Positions 3,370 through 64,000 of a stretch of 64,000 nucleotides of DNA are shown here, in pieces. Origin of the DNA: Chlorokybus atmophyticus (lineage: Eukaryota; Plantae; Mesostigma and Chlorokybus algae); assembly GCA_009103225.1 (NCBI GenBank), contig RHPI01001116.1:968861-1032860 (forward strand). The letters run 5' to 3'. Made by a program: the position numbers and the translations under genes. Under the pieces are notes generated by a model, which saw only the letters and a program-made list of their open reading frames with translations, did no database searches and was not told the origin of the DNA. How positions within the stretch are numbered: position 1 is the stretch's first letter; the number at the start of each line of letters is the position of its first letter.

Positions 3370-6089
3370 ATGGAGAGCAAGCGGGCGGCGGAGGGCGCCA
3401 TGCAGGGCAACCCAGTGGAGGGATACGCTGGCGTCGTAAACTTTGAAGAGCATCCGGGCCAAACGACGGACGTCGTCATCAAGGGCGAGGTGGGCCCCAC
3501 TGACTGAGTGCACCTGCCTGCATCCATGCTATGTTCCTGAGTGCATGCCTGTGTGTGTGATGTGTCCCATTGCTGATGGCTGTGTGTGCGTGTGTTAACA
3601 GACCAAGCAATACTCTCGCAACCCCGTCGTGCACTTCGTGCAATGGGTGCTGAGCTTCGTTATCCCCGGCATGGGCATGTTCTCCGAAGCCTACTTTATC
3701 TTCGCCGTCGGCAACCTCACCAACATATGGAAGTCGGAGTATCCTGGTAAGTTGTCAATGGATGCACGTAGCACAAGCACCCGCTCACACACATCTCAAT
3801 GTCTTTACACACCCCACCAGCAACCACAACTTCCCTGCTGCCCACAGCCTGAGGCCGTTGCTCTCTGTGTCGCGGCTATGTTTGTTTTCAGTTCCACGAC
3901 CATCATGATGTCGTGAGGACAACTCTTAACCTGGACATGTGTGTTTGCAGAGTGCTGGGTGACCCACGCGGTGTGTCGCAAAAACCTCTCGGACGTGATC
4001 CAGTACTCTCAAATCGCTGGCATCATCGTCGGCATGCTGATCATCTCCTTCTTCGCCGACCGCCTCGGACGCAAGCTGGGCTCTGTCTTGACTGCCTCCA
4101 TCATGTTGGTGCGTGCGTGCGTCATGTGTGTGCGGGTACATACATAAACCATGTTGTAAGTCGCTGCGTGACACTGTGTTGTGCTTTGACTGCAGGTAGG
4201 CGCTGGTCTTATGACGGGCGCGGCGGGCAGGTCCACGAGCGGCCTCTTCATCATGTTCCTCGTGGCCCAGGTCAGCTGAGCACGCGCACGTGCACGCACT
4301 GCTTGTGTGAAATGCTCGCTGTGCCACCAACTGTCTTTACCCCCCACCCCCGCAGATCTGGTTCGGTTTTGGCGTGGGCGGTGAGTACCCGATCGCGTCC
4401 TCCTCGGCAGCTGAGCGTGCAGAGGCAGACTCCAGACTCGTGCAGCGAAGAGGGGAGACCGTCGTGTGCGTTTTCTCCATGCAGGGCTGGGGCAACTTCG
4501 TCAACACCTTGAACGTTGTATGGCTGCTCGCCGCCTTCGGAGAAAATGGCGCCCCTTACAACCCCGGTACTTGTATAGTGTAGTTAGTTTATGCCTGAGT
4601 GCATTGCTGTTCCCAAAGCCAACTCTCTCTCGCTGTCTCTCAGGCCACCTGAATGCTGTGTGGAGGATCTCCCTTGGGCTTGGCATCTTCCCCATCATCT
4701 TCATGCTCGGCTGGCGCATTTTCGTCCTCAAGGAGAGCGCCGTGTGGAAGGCAAAGCGTCAGTCCCTCGAGAAGAGCGGCGTGGGCGTGCGCTTTGACAA
4801 CCGCAAGCTCCTCCTTGTGTTCAAACACTATGGCCCGCGACTCGTGGGCACGTCCCTGTCGTGGTTCGTGTGGGACTTTGCCTTCTACGGAAATAAGCTC
4901 TTCCAGTCGACATTCATCAAGATCATCAACCCTGGTGCAGGCGTGCGCGAAGGTGCGCGTTTGTGGGAGCGTTGTTGACATACAATGGGTTCGTATTGAG
5001 TGCTGTGTGGCTGTGCACGCAACAACCAATCACATCTAAACACGCGTACACGCAGTCGCGCTGTGGACGTTGCTCAACTCGGGAGTGGCGCTGGTGGGCT
5101 ACTACTTTGCTGCGTTCACCATCGACAAGGTGAGTGGGTAGCAATCACACTATCACAGGAGCAAGCCTAGAGTGAGTACATATAGAGATGACAAACTCAC
5201 CCACATGCGCGCACGCATGCAGACGTGGATGGGTCGTCGTCGCATGCAGAACATGGGCTTCGTGTGGATGTTTGTGCTGTTTACCATCTGCGCGGCGGCC
5301 TACCACCACCTCCTCAAGCCCGGCTCCCCCATCCACTGGTTCCAGTTCATGTACTACTTCTCGTCCTTCTGGGGCCAGTGGGGTCCCAATGCGACCACGT
5401 GGCTGCTCGCCGGTGAGCTGTACCCGACGGAGGTGCGCGCCATGTGCCATGGTATCTCCGCAGCATGGGGCAAGGTGGGTGTGTGTCTGCAAGTGTTATC
5501 AATGGTAGCGGAGGGGAGTATGCTTACGCATCTGCTCTACTGCACAGTTGGGTGCGCTTGTGTCGGGCATCATCTTTGCGCATGTCTCGGACCGCGCCAA
5601 GTTCTGGGCCTCTGGCGTGTGCGGCCTCGTCGGCATCGTCGTCACAACCCTCTTCATCCCGGATTACACCGGTCTCGACTTGCGAGAGGCAGACAAGTAC
5701 GTACCGACAAACACATGTATACCCACACCACCACTAACCCTAGGACATCCTCGTGTCTGTCCCTCTCTCACACACGCGCGCACATGCATGCATGACTCAC
5801 AGTTATACCCATACCTATACCTGTACCCATATCTACGCACACACCTCACCCACCTTATCTACCCACCAGGTTGTGGTTGTATCGGGCTGAGAACCGCTCA
5901 GACCGGTACCACGGTGAGGCCATCAACCCGCGCCACTTGTCGTTGTTTGAGAGGTTGGTTTTCCGCACGGGTGCTGGCTACAACCCTGAGCTCGCCGCCA
6001 AGGCGCACGACAGCCAGGGGTACGGCACGTATGCCAACACCAAGAGTGGAAAGGAGTTGACGAATGTAAGCAAAACGGATGTTGCCTGA
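3370..6089 (+). CDS. PHT1: MFS H+/phosphate symporter (PHT1/Pho84/algal PTA family), multi-exon
   Basis: ATG 3370 (MESKRAAEG..), phase-0 intron 3490-3601, then exons reading IPGMGMFSEAYFIF, FGVGGEYPIASSSAAE, VFSMQGWG, LSWFVWDFAFYGNKLFQS, FWGQWGPNATTWLLAGELYPTEVRAMCHGISAA; stop TGA at 6089. These are characteristic PHT1/PTA motifs. Confidence 0.93.
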
Positions 6090-7765: not shown

Positions 7766-9354
7766 ATGGCGACGGCGGTGGCGGTGGCGGCGGCGGGAGG
7801 AGGAGGAGGAGGAGGAGGAGCGAGGGAGGCGGCGAGGCAGGCAGGGAGGGATCTCCTCCAGGAATTTCGAGCCCGCCGGGCGCTGGCAGTGAGCCTCGCC
7901 GCCGCCGCCACCGCCGCCTCCGCTGAAGAGCGGGAGCCTCACAAGACTAAGCAGGAGGTGGTGGAAGGGGCGGAGGTTAAGGAGAAGGAGAAGGAGAAGG
8001 AGAAGGATGACCTGCTTGCTACGTGGAGGCGCGCACGTGCATCTTCCTCCTCCCGCCGCAGCATCGTCTCAGCCCCCCGGCATGAGGAGCAGCCAGGCCT
8101 GCTCCTGCGTCGGCCGCACGCAGTGGTAGGGTTGCTGCTGCCCCTGGCCGAGGCGGACGACAACAAGGACGCGCCACCGTCACCCGCCGCCGTCGTCTCC
8201 CCACTCCCGCCCCTGCCCTCCACCGCCGCCGCCTCCTCCTCCTCCTCTTCGTCCAGGCGTGGGCGGCGGAGCCTCGGCGTGCAGTGCGAGCCCACACCGC
8301 AGCAGGAGGAGGCGGCGGCGGCAGCAAGGCTGCCTCACGTTGAGGGTTGTTTGGGGTCACAGGAGGGGGTGACGTTAATAAGGTGAGGACGCAAGATCAC
8401 GATTGCGATTGAGTATGGTATGCATGTGCATGCATGCATGCATGCCAGTGTCCCCCTGTTGTGTTGTATAGTGCATGCAAGGTGCGTGTGCCAGTGTGTT
8501 TACAGCAGCAGCATTGACGACCCAATGTACGACAGCAGTCATGCGCACACGATTGTCATGCACATGCTGTTGCTGCTTGATGGTTATCATCATGTGGTCC
8601 CTCATAAACGCGTATCTGCATGGCACGTGTTCTGGCTGTCGTTGTGTTTTGGTCGCATTGCACCTCGCGCGTTGTTGCCATGCATGCTGAATGCAGAGGT
8701 TATATTGTTAACATCAGCGGCAGGCCCGAGCGGACAGTCCGCGAGGCGGGCACCAGCACAATAACACAAGAGGAAGAAGGCAGCATGGATCAACAGCCAC
8801 GCACGCCTCGGGTTGGAGCACAAGACGAACGCGACGTTCAGCAACTTGTGTCCAAGCTTGTGGACCTGGTCAGTAGCACCTTCATTGTGATGGTGATGAT
8901 GCCTAGGAGGGACTGTGAGAATCTACTCTCATGCTGTCATGTTGCAGACTGTTGTGGAGGCACTGTTTGATGACGCTGTGGAGGCATCCTGCCTCAGCCC
9001 GCACAACACCAATAAAAGCTCTCATGTGACGCGTGAAGCACCCGCAGGGTCAGAGCCTTGCCCTTTGCTTGGTTACTCTGGTCACCCGCAAATCGCTGTT
9101 GACAATAAAGCCACCCCTTCCCAAGCGTGTCAGGCAGAAAGGTAAGAGAAGCGAGCGTGCTGGAGAGCAGCAGAGTACTGGTTAGTACTTGCTCTTATTT
9201 GTTAATTGTGTATGTTGGTTGCAGTGACAGCGAGGATGATGATGAGTTTGAGAAGGATGAGCTTGTGCAGATGCTGCGCACTCGGGTCGAGTGGTATCGC
9301 GGTCAACTGCGCGAGAGCAGTCCACCCCATGCACAACCGAGGCTCGTGTGTTGA
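7766..9354 (+). CDS. Hypothetical low-complexity protein, 4 exons (weak PROSER3-like motifs)
   Basis: ATG 7766 (the track's 7730 start is GTG). Three GT-AG introns (after 8382, ~8870, ~9142) join ORF segments 7730, 8620, 8915 and 9127 with consistent phases (2,0,2). GC-rich exons; ends ..DDEFEKDELVQMLRTRVEWYRGQLRE..stop 9354. Confidence 0.65.
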
Positions 9355-51378: not shown

Positions 51379-51879
51379 ATGGACGCTGCCGTGCGCTTTG
51401 GCGTGGCGTCTCATGAATGCAGCGTGGGCCAGCAAGTTCCTGCCCGCTTCCCGCTGCTGAAGTTTGATAGCACAGCACCAGGTCGGCTGAGAGTGCACAC
51501 CAGGCACATGGTCGCCACACTCCGGCAGTCACAGGCCCGCCGTCTAGTCGCTATGGCGCAGGACAGTCAGGGAGCCAATGCAGGTATGATGACCTTGCAC
51601 AGCAGATTCTCTCTCTATATATATACATGAACGCTGGACATCATGCTGATTTGTCTCATTGCAGAGGAGGAGCAGCCCCGATGGCTGCAGAACCTTCTTC
51701 AAGCAGTCGGTCGCGTCGAGGCAGGCCTAGCTGGGGTCAAGACAGAGGTAGCTGGCGTCAAGAAGGACGTAGCTGGGGTCGAGGTACAGCTTACACCTAT
51801 TCAGGAAGGCTGGGATGAGTTTTCTGGCGGTCTCAAACGGCTTGCTGGCAAAGACTTTGAGGACACCACTACTTATTAG
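51379..51879 (+). pseudogene. Array gene copy A: truncated 139-aa paralogue (transit-like peptide + coiled coil, no nuclease domain)
   Basis: Exons 51379-51583 and 51665-51879 (phase 1); ends ..GKDFEDTTTY-TAG. Confidence 0.75.
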
Positions 51880-56987: not shown

Positions 56988-57328
56988 ATGGACGCTGCCG
57001 TGCGCTTTGGCGTGGCGTCTCATGGATGCAGCGTGGGCCAGCAAGTTCCTGCCCGCTTCCCGCTGCTGAAGTTTAATAGCACAGCACCAGGTCGGCCGAG
57101 AGTGCACACCAGGCACATGGTCGCCACACTCCGGCAGTCACAGGCCCGCCGTCTAGTCGCTATGGCGCAGGACAGTCAGGGAGCCAATGCAGGTATGATG
57201 ACCTTGCACAGCAGANNNNNNNNNNNNNNNNNNNNNNNNNNNNNNNNNNNNNNNNNNNNNNNNNNNNNNNNNNNNNNNNNNNNNNNNNNNNNNNNNNNNN
57301 NNNNNNNNNNNNNNNNNNNNNNNNNNNN

Positions 57329-57400
<72 letters not shown>

Positions 57401-57658
57401 CGTGTGTGAACGCTGGACATCATGCTGATTTGTCTCATGGCAGAGGAGGAGCAGCCCCAATGGCTGCAGAACCTACTTCAAGCAATAGCTCGCGTCGAGG
57501 CAGGCCTAGCTGGGGTCAAGGCAGACGTAGCTGGCGTCAAGACAGACGTAGCTGAGGTCGAGGCACACCTTAAACCTGTTCGAGAAGGTTGGGATGAGTT
57601 TTCTGGGGGTCTCAAACGGCTTGCTGGCAAAGACTTTGAGGACACCACGACTCATTAG
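56988..57658 (+). pseudogene. Array gene copy B: truncated 139-aa paralogue
   Basis: Exons 56988-57192 and 57444-57658; the intron contains an N gap and (CT)n; ends ..GKDFEDTTTH-TAG, followed in frame by an 80-codon open stretch. Confidence 0.75.
57216..57397. repeat. Assembly gap (N 57216-57328) followed by (CT)n microsatellite
   Basis: Direct; the corresponding intron in A and C has only a short CT/AT run. Confidence 0.95.
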
Positions 57659-60600: not shown

Positions 60601-61683
60601 GCGCATGCTGATTGAGCATGCACAAAACGCAACAGTATGAAGTGACGATGTGTGCATCTTGATGTGTAAAAGCTTGAGATTGCCATGTGTACATTCCCAT
60701 AATCACACTGTGCTACGAATAGCATTCATTTTGGCTGCCTCGGCTCATGAAACCCGTCCACGTGGCGTACCGTGGTAGTATGTGAGTCCTGTCACAGGTC
60801 CTGTCACAGGTCTCCAGGCAAACAACGCCCGGGTGTGTCCCGCTGAGCTTACAGCAAGGCAGCGGCGGCGTGGGGGGCGGCTTGCGGTTGGTTGTCGCTG
60901 TCGCTGGCAGGAGGGGTAGACGGAGAGGGTGAGGGCGCTGCGCTAGTCGTAGTCGTAGGATAAAAGAACTGAGTGGTGACCGGTGGTTGGTGCCACAGCT
61001 GGGCGGCGCTTACGGGATTGGGGACTGACGTTGCGGAGGAGCGAGCAGCTGTTGGCCCCCCTTGGCAGACAGCCTTAGCCTCATCTCGCTTGTGGCCTCG
61101 CCTGCAGCAGCTGAGGCGCCCCGTCGCTCTCTTCGTCCTTGGTCGTTGCATGTAAGTGTCAACCCTCCCGTTGCTGCCAAGTCACCCGTCTGGCTGTGCC
61201 GTGTTATTGTTGTGGCAACGTACTAGTGCTCTTTTCTGCTGGCTGCTGGGATTCAGTACTGGTGTGGCACCAGTCGTAGTACTAGTAGTGGTAAGTAGTA
61301 CTGAGAGCTTCAAACAGTAACCTGCTCCCCACCCGCTTCTGGCAATGCAACTGACATTGACAACGGGGGACAGGACATGTTGCCGAGCATTGTGTGCCGT
61401 CCACTCTGTGAAATCGAATGCGTCACCATCACCTGACCTTCTGCAGAATCTGATGCATGGCATTAGTAACCCTCCGCAGCAGGGAATGTAATGCAGGGTG
61501 TCCTTCATCACATCTCTCATCATGTATGCATCCGTACGCATCAGCATGCAGGCGGATAGCGTCTCATTTGGCATGCTGCTTGTGCCTTCGAGTTACCTGC
61601 ACCTGCCTACCGTACGTAGTGTCTTGGTTCTTACTTGCTTTTGTCTGTGCTGCCCAGCAACCACACCGACTTACAAACCTGCA

Positions 61684-62697
61684 ATGGACGCTGCCGTGCG
61701 CTTTGGCGTGGCGTCTCATGGATGCAGCGTGGGCCAGCAAGTTCCTGCCCGCTTCCCGCTGCTGAAGTTTGATAGCACAGCACCAGGTCGGCCGAGAGTG
61801 CACACCAGGCACATGGTCGCCACACTCCGGCAGTCACAGGCCCGCCGTCTAGTCGCTATGGCGCAGGACAGTCAGGGAGCCGATGCAGGTATGATGACCT
61901 TGCACAGCAGATTCTCTCTCTATATATATACATGAACGCTGGACATCATGCTGATTTGTCTCATTGCAGAGGAGGAGCAGCCCCGATGGCTGCAGAACCT
62001 TCTTCAAGCAGTCGGTCGCGTCGAGGCAGGCCTAGCTGGGGTCAAGACAGAGGTAGCTGGGGTCAAGAGAGACGTAGCTGGCGTCAAGACAGACGTAGCT
62101 GGCGTCAAGAAGGACGTAGCTGGGGTCGAGGTACAGCTTACACCTATTCAGGAAGGCTGGCCTTTGGTGTCTGGGTCCGTCAATCGGCTTGTCGGCAAGG
62201 AGTTTGAAGACAATGTCAAGCAGACACCGGGCATCTACCTTCGAGAACTGATGGCGGCCCCGGTGCTCTACTCCCAGAAAGACCTGGTGCTTGCTGCGAA
62301 TGTAGCGCAGGCATCGGGGGTCTTCACCTCTGATGAGTTACGCCAACTCCAAGAGTTGGATGCTGTCTTCATAGGGACGGTGGAGTTTGACTGGTCGGAA
62401 CGGTTTCCGGGGCGCTTGCGTAACGTTCCTCGCGTTTATACGTCGCCGATCCTTGTGATGGCAGCGACGGAGATCAGTGTGACGCTGGACGCCACTGACA
62501 TTGAGCGAGCAGCTCAACGTCGTGACATTTTGCAGAAGCTGCTACCTGTCACATCGGGCTACCGCCTTATGGCACTCGTGGTAGGTGACAAGCCACAGTT
62601 CACAGGTGATAAAGACAAAGAGCTGCTGGCGCTGGCGGAGCGGCTCAATGTGTTTGTTGTCGCCAACGCACAGCTGAAATGGCCACGGTATGCTTAG
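61684..62697 (+). CDS. Array gene copy C: 310-aa transit-like peptide + heptad coiled coil + putative PD-(D/E)XK-like nuclease-fold domain
   Basis: Exons 61684-61888 and 61970-62697 (GT-AG, phase 1, 933 nt). Motifs GKEFEDNV, ELDAVFIG, ATEISVTLDATDIERAAQRRDILQKL, LMALVVG. The CDS is well supported; the fold call is inferred. Confidence 0.75.
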
Positions 62698-64000
62698 GTT
62701 ATTAAAGTGTATGATTGCTAACATGCTTGCAATGTGCATGTCATTCATTATTTGTGCACGTGCGCAGGCCTGAACAGGACTTGAGCACATGAGGAGGCTT
62801 TGTGGCACATCTAGACCGGAGTTCAATTGGCAGTGGGAGATGTCCGGGGCGTGTAGGCCGGCGCCGGTGTGTGCACATGTGTTGGTGGCAATAATGGTAT
62901 CATTTAGCAGGCAGGAGAGGAGGTCAATACTTATTGGCTCCATGCTGTACCTATTTGCATAGTTGCTACGACTGAAGCACATCTTGATGCGTGCAATACT
63001 TGTTCATGTGTCACAACCATGATGCAAGGGGTGCAAAAGTTGATGCATTGTCTGCAGCATGGAACTTTCCTGCATCGCACTCGGAGTTTTTATCATCTTC
63101 TCCTCCAAGGACAGGGTATCAGGCTGGCAACGAGTGCATGGCAACATTCACACGCATGCAGCACATGCGTATGAATATTGTGCTTGCAAGAGTGTGACAC
63201 TCTTGCCAGCTTAACAGAACACATGCTGGCACGTACGCACATGCATGCGCGTACATGCGCGCGAAAACATGCGAGCACACAAACACACAGAAGGCACATA
63301 CTATGGGTGTGACACACATAACGCACAACACAATTGCTCTCCGTCCCTTGACAGTGCAGTCTTCTTTAACGCAAGCATACAGGTGCGCACACGCGTGCTG
63401 GCACTGTGCATGCATAAAGGTGCGCGCATGCACACATGCGCAATCAACATGTATCTATACATCACTCATGGAAACAAACACGGCTGGCGCAGCGCGCGCG
63501 CGGGGCAACGAATTATGCACCATTTTAAAGAGTCCCGCGAGGACGCCACGTTCGTGCACGACCACCGACAACAACCACCACTACCGCCAGCCCACAAACA
63601 CCGGCATCGAAAGGCGCTGCGCGAGCACACGCTTTACAATTTCTAGTTGCTGCTGACAAGGTGAGCATCATTGAAACCATGAAGTTATGGGGTGCATGGG
63701 TGAGCTAGCAAAGGTACAGATAGGTCTTGTTGTTGCAACAGCAATAGAATCACATGAACAATCGCTTTGACCGCTTGCGCATGTTCGTGCAAGGTGATAT
63801 GGTATGACACACGCATCGTTGCCTGCCGACCTATGTTGCCCAAGTGTCGCCTACGATGTTGCTCATCAGCTGGTTTAACACAGGTCTCATCCTCCACTCT
63901 TTCATAGGCATCCGCGCGCGATGCGGCTCTCAGACACGCGCAAGCAGCTGCAAGCCTTGTACGAGGTGAGAGCTTGACACATCAACACAACAATGCCAAC

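Follow-up and report, generated by a model that had tools for sequence, protein, structure and literature searches.

Coiled-coil stalks followed by small nuclease-like heads have been described in prokaryotes. DUF3782 constitutes the coiled-coil stalks of a prokaryotic PD-(D/E)XK endonuclease family (Hartmann et al. 2016, PMC4786415), and DUF3782 (PF12644) stalks are combined with PDDEXK_10 (PF07788, formerly DUF1626, COG5493) or DUF8196 (PF26618) heads (Hartmann et al. 2016, PMC4786415; Steczkiewicz et al. 2012, PMC3424549), therefore the architecture of stalk plus nuclease head is already known. In one documented variant of the PD-(D/E)XK superfamily the active-site lysine has moved to the second core helix, and active enzymes of this fold without the strand lysine have also been documented (PMC3424549). 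The gene described here comes from the alga Chlorokybus atmophyticus and lies in a stretch of 64,000 nt of contig RHPI01001116.1 (positions 968,861 to 1,032,860, forward strand), called the window below, in which all coordinates are counted. It is the third of three related copies in tandem (copy 3) and encodes a basic leader, a heptad stalk and a C-terminal head modelled with a restriction-endonuclease-like fold. In Chlorokybus copy 3 is a nuclear gene, intact and spliced, its coding sequence divided among three exons; most likely it was transferred from a bacterium to the alga and gained its introns and basic leader afterwards.

The ATG start codon of copy 3 is located at 61684 on the + strand and the reading frame is kept from exon 1 to exon 2. 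The gene is composed of the following parts:

61684..61888, + strand: coding exon 1, 205 nt, encoding the 68-aa basic leader
61889..61969, + strand: intron 1, 81 nt, GT..AG, phase 1, skipped in contigs of runs X1, X2 and X3, not in DNA run X4
61970..62193, + strand: stalk, i.e. P-R-W helix, heptad array and linker (tandem repeat; bacterial stalk profile)
62194..62687, + strand: restriction-endonuclease-like (PD-(D/E)XK-fold) head (bacteria-only profile; AlphaFold2 (AF2) model; structural matches)
62383..62448, + strand: alga-specific insertion of about 18 aa, located in the hairpin between the D strand and the E-x-S strand (alignments; dip in predicted local distance difference test score, pLDDT)
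62688..62767, + strand: intron 2, 80 nt, GT..AG, spliced out in contig 3 of X1 (735 nt) and contig 10 of X2
62768..62792, + strand: coding part of exon 3, the last 8 codons, with TGA at 62790-62792
61152..61657, + strand: probable intron in the 5' untranslated region (UTR), GT..AG, with an upstream non-coding exon ending near 61151; tentative

The exon structure was followed in contigs of four public runs mapped onto 61300-63000; the three small runs were RNA-like (X1, X2 and X3) and X4 was a DNA run. The original prediction had proposed a spliced open reading frame of 310 aa. Its ATG, exon 1, 81-nt intron and frame proved to be real, and the intron was spliced out in all three RNA-like runs and retained in the DNA run, with the caveat that the contigs skipping it may derive from paralogues that have this part in common. 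The second intron was missing from that model. It was spliced out in contigs of two runs, and therefore the coding sequence does not end at 62697 (...KWPRYA and a stop codon); the protein is 315 aa long and its C-terminus reads ...KWPR, followed after the intron by PEQDLST and the stop. The 3' UTR extends to at least 62980. The probable 5'-UTR intron is based on an X3 contig whose loose end at 61658 resembles 61122-61151 and which, having 2 mismatches, is possibly paralogue-derived. An RNA-like X1 contig of 562 nt crosses the same putative intron unspliced (window 61300-61687), which could mean that the intron was retained, that a second start site is used or that the library contained DNA.

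The sequence motifs named at the outset, GKEFEDNV, ELDAVFIG, EISVTLDATDIERAAQRRDILQKL and LMALVVG, were all found in copy 3, and the heptad array was confirmed as 4.5 copies of a 21-bp unit at 62033-62127. The leader is indeed basic and poor in acidic residues: its first 60 aa have a net charge of +7, no Glu, 15 % Ala and 13 % Arg. Such a composition is typical of transit peptides and suggests that the protein may be targeted to an organelle.

Searches and folding were done exon by exon, so models and scores refer to parts and not to the joined protein. No match of the head was found in Pfam, NCBIfam or PDB sequence searches. Scans of Pfam, NCBIfam, PADLOC and PHROGs with the alga and its bacterial relatives returned coiled-coil noise only, PDB sequence searches with the protein and the family profile returned only coiled coils (mostly designed) and chance P450 matches, and a word-indexed search with exon 2 gave stalk matches only, to short Chlorokybus paralogues and to bacterial proteins with AGVKTD-type repeats. 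An exhaustive phmmer search of the head against 1.8 billion representatives gave one match (E 7.6e-4), a fragmentary bacterial protein from a metagenome reading ...LDAIVRG...YLAVEISAKIDARDVERAA. More than 200 bacterial proteins of 160-290 aa, their heads without a Pfam domain, were reached from this match. The automatic annotation of this stalked family (seryl-tRNA synthetase, FtsB) is wrong because of the coil. Most of the matching proteins are from Chloroflexota: genomes of Ca. Roseilinea, Anaerolineae and Thermoflexales encode close relatives, and a single metagenome-assembled genome may contain as many as four of them. One named family member comes from Latescibacterota, and clusters from Latescibacterota and Armatimonadota also belong to the family.

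The relationship was confirmed in the reverse direction. A bacteria-only profile of 19 heads, with the alga left out, matched algal exon 2 with 43.2 bits (E 4.2e-6 at Z 1.8e9), and the bacterial stalk profile matched algal residues 4-60 with 28.8 bits, in comparison to at most 6.7 in 500 shuffles. Comparison of the sequences shows algal exons 2-3 as collinear with the bacterial family, which is composed of a helix, a variable number of V-x-x-[LV]-K-x-D heptads and a head of about 138 aa. The Chloroflexota members (e.g. P0065, P0072 and P0073) resemble the alga in the P-[DR]-W helix, in heptads of variable number and in a common head signature, G-D/K-x-[LF]-E, Y, L-D, E-[VI]-S, D-[VI]-E-R-A..R and V-V-x-G-[DE], and their fold is the same (template-modelling score, TM, 0.72-0.73), whereas the identity is only 21-33 %. 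The E-(V/I)-S..D(V/I)ERA pattern recognized in the original prediction is the exact signature of this family, and the description of the head as prokaryote-like was well founded, since its sole detectable relatives are prokaryotic proteins with a heptad stalk.

The alga differs from the bacterial family in several respects. Its head (numbered from G at 62194 as residue 1) contains the 18-aa hairpin insertion and has lost R6, Y8, R21 and R60, and a linker of about 20 aa, missing in bacteria, separates the heptads from the head. Algal exon 2 is collinear with the bacterial protein less its first ~37 residues; instead of these the alga has the 68-aa leader exon, for which no counterpart was seen in the bacterial relatives, and introns.

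The number of heptads varies from 1 to about 9 in near-identical bacterial proteins. The family proteins range from 214 to 284 aa in steps mostly of 7, therefore the stalk gains and loses whole heptads between strains; in one metagenome the same tk / gene / mscL / trpC / sbcCD locus was found with stalked proteins of 258 and 269 aa (loci L001, L002, L003, L018 and L019; gene at 8001-8810, 4607-5416, 2007-2816 and 5001-5777). Runs of AGVKTD-type heptads occur in many unrelated bacterial proteins (P0003-P0019), thus the repeat motif is widespread outside the nuclease-fold family. The algal stalk (window 61972-62130) matches PDB entry 7o97 (E 8e-5), a chain from Ca. Giovannonibacteria described as a hypothetical protein, and also designed trimeric or tetrameric coils. 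Nothing on this gene, DUF8196 or PDB entry 7o97 was found in the literature.

A relationship to DUF3782 had been suggested before and was a good lead as far as architecture and fold are concerned. The DUF3782, PDDEXK_10 and DUF8196 proteins, like the algal one, have a coiled-coil stalk on the N-terminal side of a small restriction-endonuclease-like head, and they form the nearest named clusters (language-model features 0.87-0.90; TM 0.53-0.58). The alga gave no hidden Markov model (HMM) match to DUF3782, PDDEXK_10 or DUF8196 even at E up to 10. Three of the 39 family members touched PF07788 (best E 0.0047) and one touched DUF3782 (E 0.27), all below threshold. Moreover, the stalk of the alga and its family is made of plain heptads, without the nonad beta-layers of the crenarchaeal DUF3782 proteins. 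The likeness to the DUF3782 systems is thus one of architecture and fold, not of HMM membership.

A role as a toxin or in a conflict system, also proposed in the original prediction, found no support. In the neighbourhoods of five bacterial relatives no conserved partner, defence island or immunity-like gene was present; the genes stand solitary among housekeeping genes, with neighbours differing by lineage, and PADLOC gave nothing significant. Neither a toxin-antitoxin nor a defence or effector function is supported by these results. The same holds for the suggested similarity to Crinkler/RHS-type effectors: no Header or RHS domain was found in Pfam scans of either exon, and the whole of exon 2 is explained by the bacterial stalked family.

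The head could be modelled with confidence when its relatives were included. The AF2 model calculated with 32 bacterial heads as the alignment reached pLDDT 87.4 and a predicted TM score (pTM) of 0.83, and was weak only at residues 64-85, which correspond to the alga-specific insertion; the single-sequence model of the head had pLDDT 40. The modelled elements are helix 2-10, strands 21-25, 57-63 and 86-97, helix 100-114 and strand 124-133, so that the core reads helix, three strands, helix, strand with a mixed sheet, the arrangement that defines the restriction-endonuclease-like superfamily. VIA-align comparison with 48,161 chains placed NucS/EndoMS (2vld) at the top (Z 9.9, rmsd (root-mean-square deviation) 2.6 A over 104 residues), followed by AF1548 (1y88, Z 8.0) and, further down, by an XisH-like protein, PaqCI, Can2, BsmI, Card1, NucC, FokI, Hjc and others; the top 50 consisted almost entirely of PD-(D/E)XK nucleases. 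Foldseek against the PDB gave no match below E 0.01 and a weak list dominated by restriction enzymes, so the fold call rests on VIA-align. The ESM Atlas shape search found Chloroflexota hypothetical proteins nearest (TM 0.72-0.73), then DUF8196/DUF3782 clusters (TM 0.53-0.58), and the language-model search named DUF8196, PDDEXK_10 and DUF3782 (features 0.87-0.90). On the strength of the model and its structural matches, the head is a domain of restriction-endonuclease-like fold, as had been predicted for the C-terminal part.

The best structural match, the C-terminal nuclease domain of NucS/EndoMS, has 10 % sequence identity to the head, and the algal protein has neither the N-terminal domain of NucS nor its PCNA-binding tail. 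The third strand of NucS carries E-x-K, that of the algal head E-x-S. Nine columns were invariant in the alignment of 33 sequences (E5, Y15, E93, S95, D102, R105, R109, V129 and G131) and all are kept in the alga, which also keeps D56 (conserved in 97 % of bacterial sequences) and, overall, 15 of the 29 columns conserved in at least 85 % of bacteria. By secondary structure E5 (in helix 2-10), D56 (ahead of strand 57-63) and E93 (in the third strand) occupy the canonical positions of the metal site, and the invariant D102, R105 and R109 lie in the next helix.

Neither protein set searched for relatives of the head (5.8 billion and 1.8 billion sequences, including EukProt) contained a eukaryotic one; all relatives were bacterial or metagenomic. 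Vertical eukaryotic descent was rejected on this basis. Contamination of the assembly by bacterial DNA was excluded by the introns (two to three, spliceosomal and contig-confirmed), by the position of the gene in tandem with algal paralogues of 90 % identity on one scaffold and by the presence of the same DNA in an independent DNA run. With contamination excluded and no eukaryotic relative at hand, horizontal transfer from bacteria is the best reading. That no transfer took place, the gene being either a contaminant or an old eukaryotic gene lost everywhere else, would agree with a tree that places the alga inside no bacterial clade, and is hardly credible against the introns, the array, the DNA run and the missing eukaryotic relatives taken together. 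The acquisition and intron gain proposed in the original prediction are thus upheld by the spliceosomal introns, by exon 1 having no bacterial counterpart and by the exclusively bacterial head relatives, and not by the phylogeny, in which no supported set holds the alga. With an algal branch of about 4.6 changes per site, the tree resolved no donor clade; the Thermoflexales/Roseilinea-type subfamily is the one indicated by the highest identity (31-33 %) and by the ...S-x-x-[IL]-D signature.

The two other copies of the array, both on the same strand, and a stretch downstream of copy 3 that resembles them, are:

51379..51879, + strand: copy 1, short paralogue; exon 1 51379-51583, exon 2 51665-51879; ends GKDFEDTTTY and stop
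56988..57658, + strand: copy 2, short paralogue; exon 1 56988-57192, exon 2 57444-57658; ends GKDFEDTTTH and stop
62745..62887, + strand: 3'-flank homology stretch, 63-65 % identity to DNA at and after the stop codons of copies 1 and 2

The starts of the three copies are about 5.6 and 4.7 kb apart. Copy 3 shows about 90 % DNA identity to copies 1 and 2 from ~1.1 kb upstream of its ATG to 62212, where the match ends, and the leader of exon 1 is common to the three at 96-97 %. The tandem amplification noticed in the original prediction therefore applies to the 5' half of the gene only (promoter, leader exon, intron and heptad stalk), present three times, whereas the head was found once in the window by tblastn and copies 1 and 2 end right past GKDFED. 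Copy 1 encodes the leader and a stalk with 2+1 heptads and is identical to Joint Genome Institute (JGI) model Chlat1/5431; this model and Chlat1/5432, both on scaffold Chrsp35, represent the products of copies 1 and 2. Model Chlat1/5432 (P0007) was apparently mis-built, with a foreign N-terminus and a skipped stop codon, and the intron of copy 2 (window 57216-57399) contains an assembly gap of 113 N and, after it, a long (CT)n run. A fourth short, head-less paralogue lies on Chrsp28 (P0001). The algal paralogues have 2-5 heptads each. The GC (guanine-cytosine) content is even across the window.

The downstream stretch 62745-62887 begins with the final 23 nt of intron 2 and runs through exon 3 into the 3' UTR. 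Its local alignment score with the flanks of copies 1 and 2 was 35-42, in comparison to 14 +/- 1.4 for shuffles, and the counterpart starts a few bases before their stop codons. As judged from these alignments, copies 1 and 2 are shown to be deletion derivatives that lost the head through a deletion of ~530 bp (about 62213-62744) ending inside the former intron 2. Since the stop codon of copies 1 and 2 lies within former intron sequence, intron 2 predates the deletion. The identity of 90 % in the 5' half (window 60852-62212) versus 64 % in the 3' flank suggests that gene conversion keeps the promoter, leader and stalk alike among the copies.

The RNA-like contig covering the head (735 nt) was 97 % alike to the window, and its 13 listed differences comprised 8 silent changes and 5 replacements, all of the latter outside the conserved columns. 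The excess of silent changes indicates constraint, whether this contig stems from an orthologue of another strain or from a paralogue. Other RNA-like contigs depart from the window within the stalk (loose ends at 62058-62160) and run into other linkers, one of which resembles ...EAKLQPIREG and matches none of the three window copies, so further stalk paralogues are transcribed elsewhere in the genome.

The reading favoured here, and held to be fairly probable, is that copy 3 is a transferred bacterial gene whose product is directed to an organelle, where heads bundled by their stalks bind and probably cut nucleic acid. After the transfer the gene would have acquired its introns and the 68-aa basic leader exon, and the leader, as predicted from its composition, probably sends the protein into an organelle. 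Through the stalk the chains would form a parallel bundle, a trimer being favoured by Val at the two core positions. The heads, clustered in this way, would bind nucleic acid and probably cut it. Their metal site would consist of E5 (first helix), D56 (where the second core strand starts) and E93 (third strand), and in place of the missing Lys one of the invariant Arg residues in the next helix, R105 or R109, would act. The short paralogues, apparently far more abundant, would enter the same bundles.

Several observations weigh against this. The algal terminal branch has a length of 4.58 changes per site and no supported set in the tree holds the alga. MAFFT gave two solutions for the last third of the head, of which the one with the smaller gap (LMALVVGD vs IPVVAGE) was used for the model; the other shifts the fourth strand and leaves the catalytic-site columns unaffected. 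The canonical (D/E)-x-K is replaced in the strand by E93-I-S95, with Ser in 33/33 sequences, and the alga has lost four near-invariant residues, three of them Arg (R6D, Y8V, R21A and R60I), which may matter for nucleic-acid binding. No described activity, substrate or location was found for any family member. Finally, no single contig of the four runs joins leader, stalk and head, because the assemblies break within the heptad repeat, and the joined mRNA is therefore an inferred one; in the RNA-like contigs the head had a word depth of 6-15, compared with ~1000 for the shared stalk.

In a rival reading the head, of the same origin and fold, would be non-enzymatic, i.e. a nucleic-acid-binding or purely structural module on a stalk, further weakened in the alga by the loss of conserved Arg. 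This is given a minor though appreciable chance. The invariant S95, the loss of R6, Y8, R21 and R60 and a family with neither a described activity nor a Pfam or NCBIfam model fit such a module, whereas the acidic residues at the three canonical metal positions and D102, R105 and R109, kept across very distant members, are hard to explain without a catalytic or ligand site. The substitution of Lys by Ser had been regarded in the original prediction as a catalytic alteration in the alga; Ser is invariant throughout the family, so it is not an algal loss. Active enzymes of the fold without the strand Lys are documented (PMC3424549), which speaks against the non-enzymatic reading. In Pa4535 (1y0k) the strand Lys has moved to the second core helix, and BstYI is shown among the active-site variants (PMC3424549). 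Like these variants the head has no strand Lys, while the helix that follows carries an invariant basic residue (R105, R109); the head differs from Pa4535 in that the candidate is Arg, not Lys, and that its placement in the site is a predicted one. BstYI reads E-x-S. Completion of the metal site by R105 or R109 is put forward as a proposal.

The difference in depth may be read in another way, with the long gene as a fading relic and the leader plus stalk product of the short paralogues as the form used by the alga, e.g. as a structural coiled coil in the organelle. Two of the three window copies and P0001 on the other scaffold have no head, the depth is ~1000 for shared stalk contigs vs 6-15 for the head, the algal branch is long and many conserved positions have been lost. 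The dominance of the short forms is hinted at by the word depth, contig depth being a poor measure of expression. The intact reading frame, the splicing of both introns, the retention of all alignment-invariant residues and the excess of silent changes over replacements in the compared transcript nevertheless make a relic improbable.

The short paralogues share the leader and stalk, so they are able to join the same bundles as copy 3. A model of two long stalks and one short paralogue gave a parallel in-register bundle with an ipSAE interface score of 0.64 against 0.00 for the best control; 51 of 78 solved complexes attained this mark, as did 2 of 108 mismatched pairs, the runs agreed in at least 89 % of contacts and the partner had pLDDT of at least 75. 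Co-assembly of long and short forms is plausible on this model, which close coil paralogues would be expected to pass and which leaves the oligomer number unsettled. An additional role of the head-less paralogues as regulators, which by co-assembling (probably into a trimeric bundle) would set the number of nuclease-fold heads per particle, is proposed tentatively and considered rather unlikely; in such a scheme gene conversion would preserve the similarity of the 5' halves. If it is true, the head-less paralogues would represent a dominant-negative or dosage control, antitoxin-like, made by deleting the head of the transferred gene.

The favoured reading, transfer of a bacterial gene into the alga, makes this locus a clean, well-documented case of the settling of a bacterial gene in one of the streptophyte algae that branched off earliest. 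Under this reading the order of events can be traced in the DNA: after the transfer introns were gained, a leader exon was added, the gene was duplicated in tandem and, at the end, a deletion with one end inside an intron removed the head. The locus also points to a bacterial family of considerable size with no Pfam model and no described function, with an E-x-S head and a stalk that varies in length by whole heptads. Should the head prove to be a nuclease directed to an organelle, the maintenance or turnover of organelle DNA in this lineage would include a component derived from bacteria.

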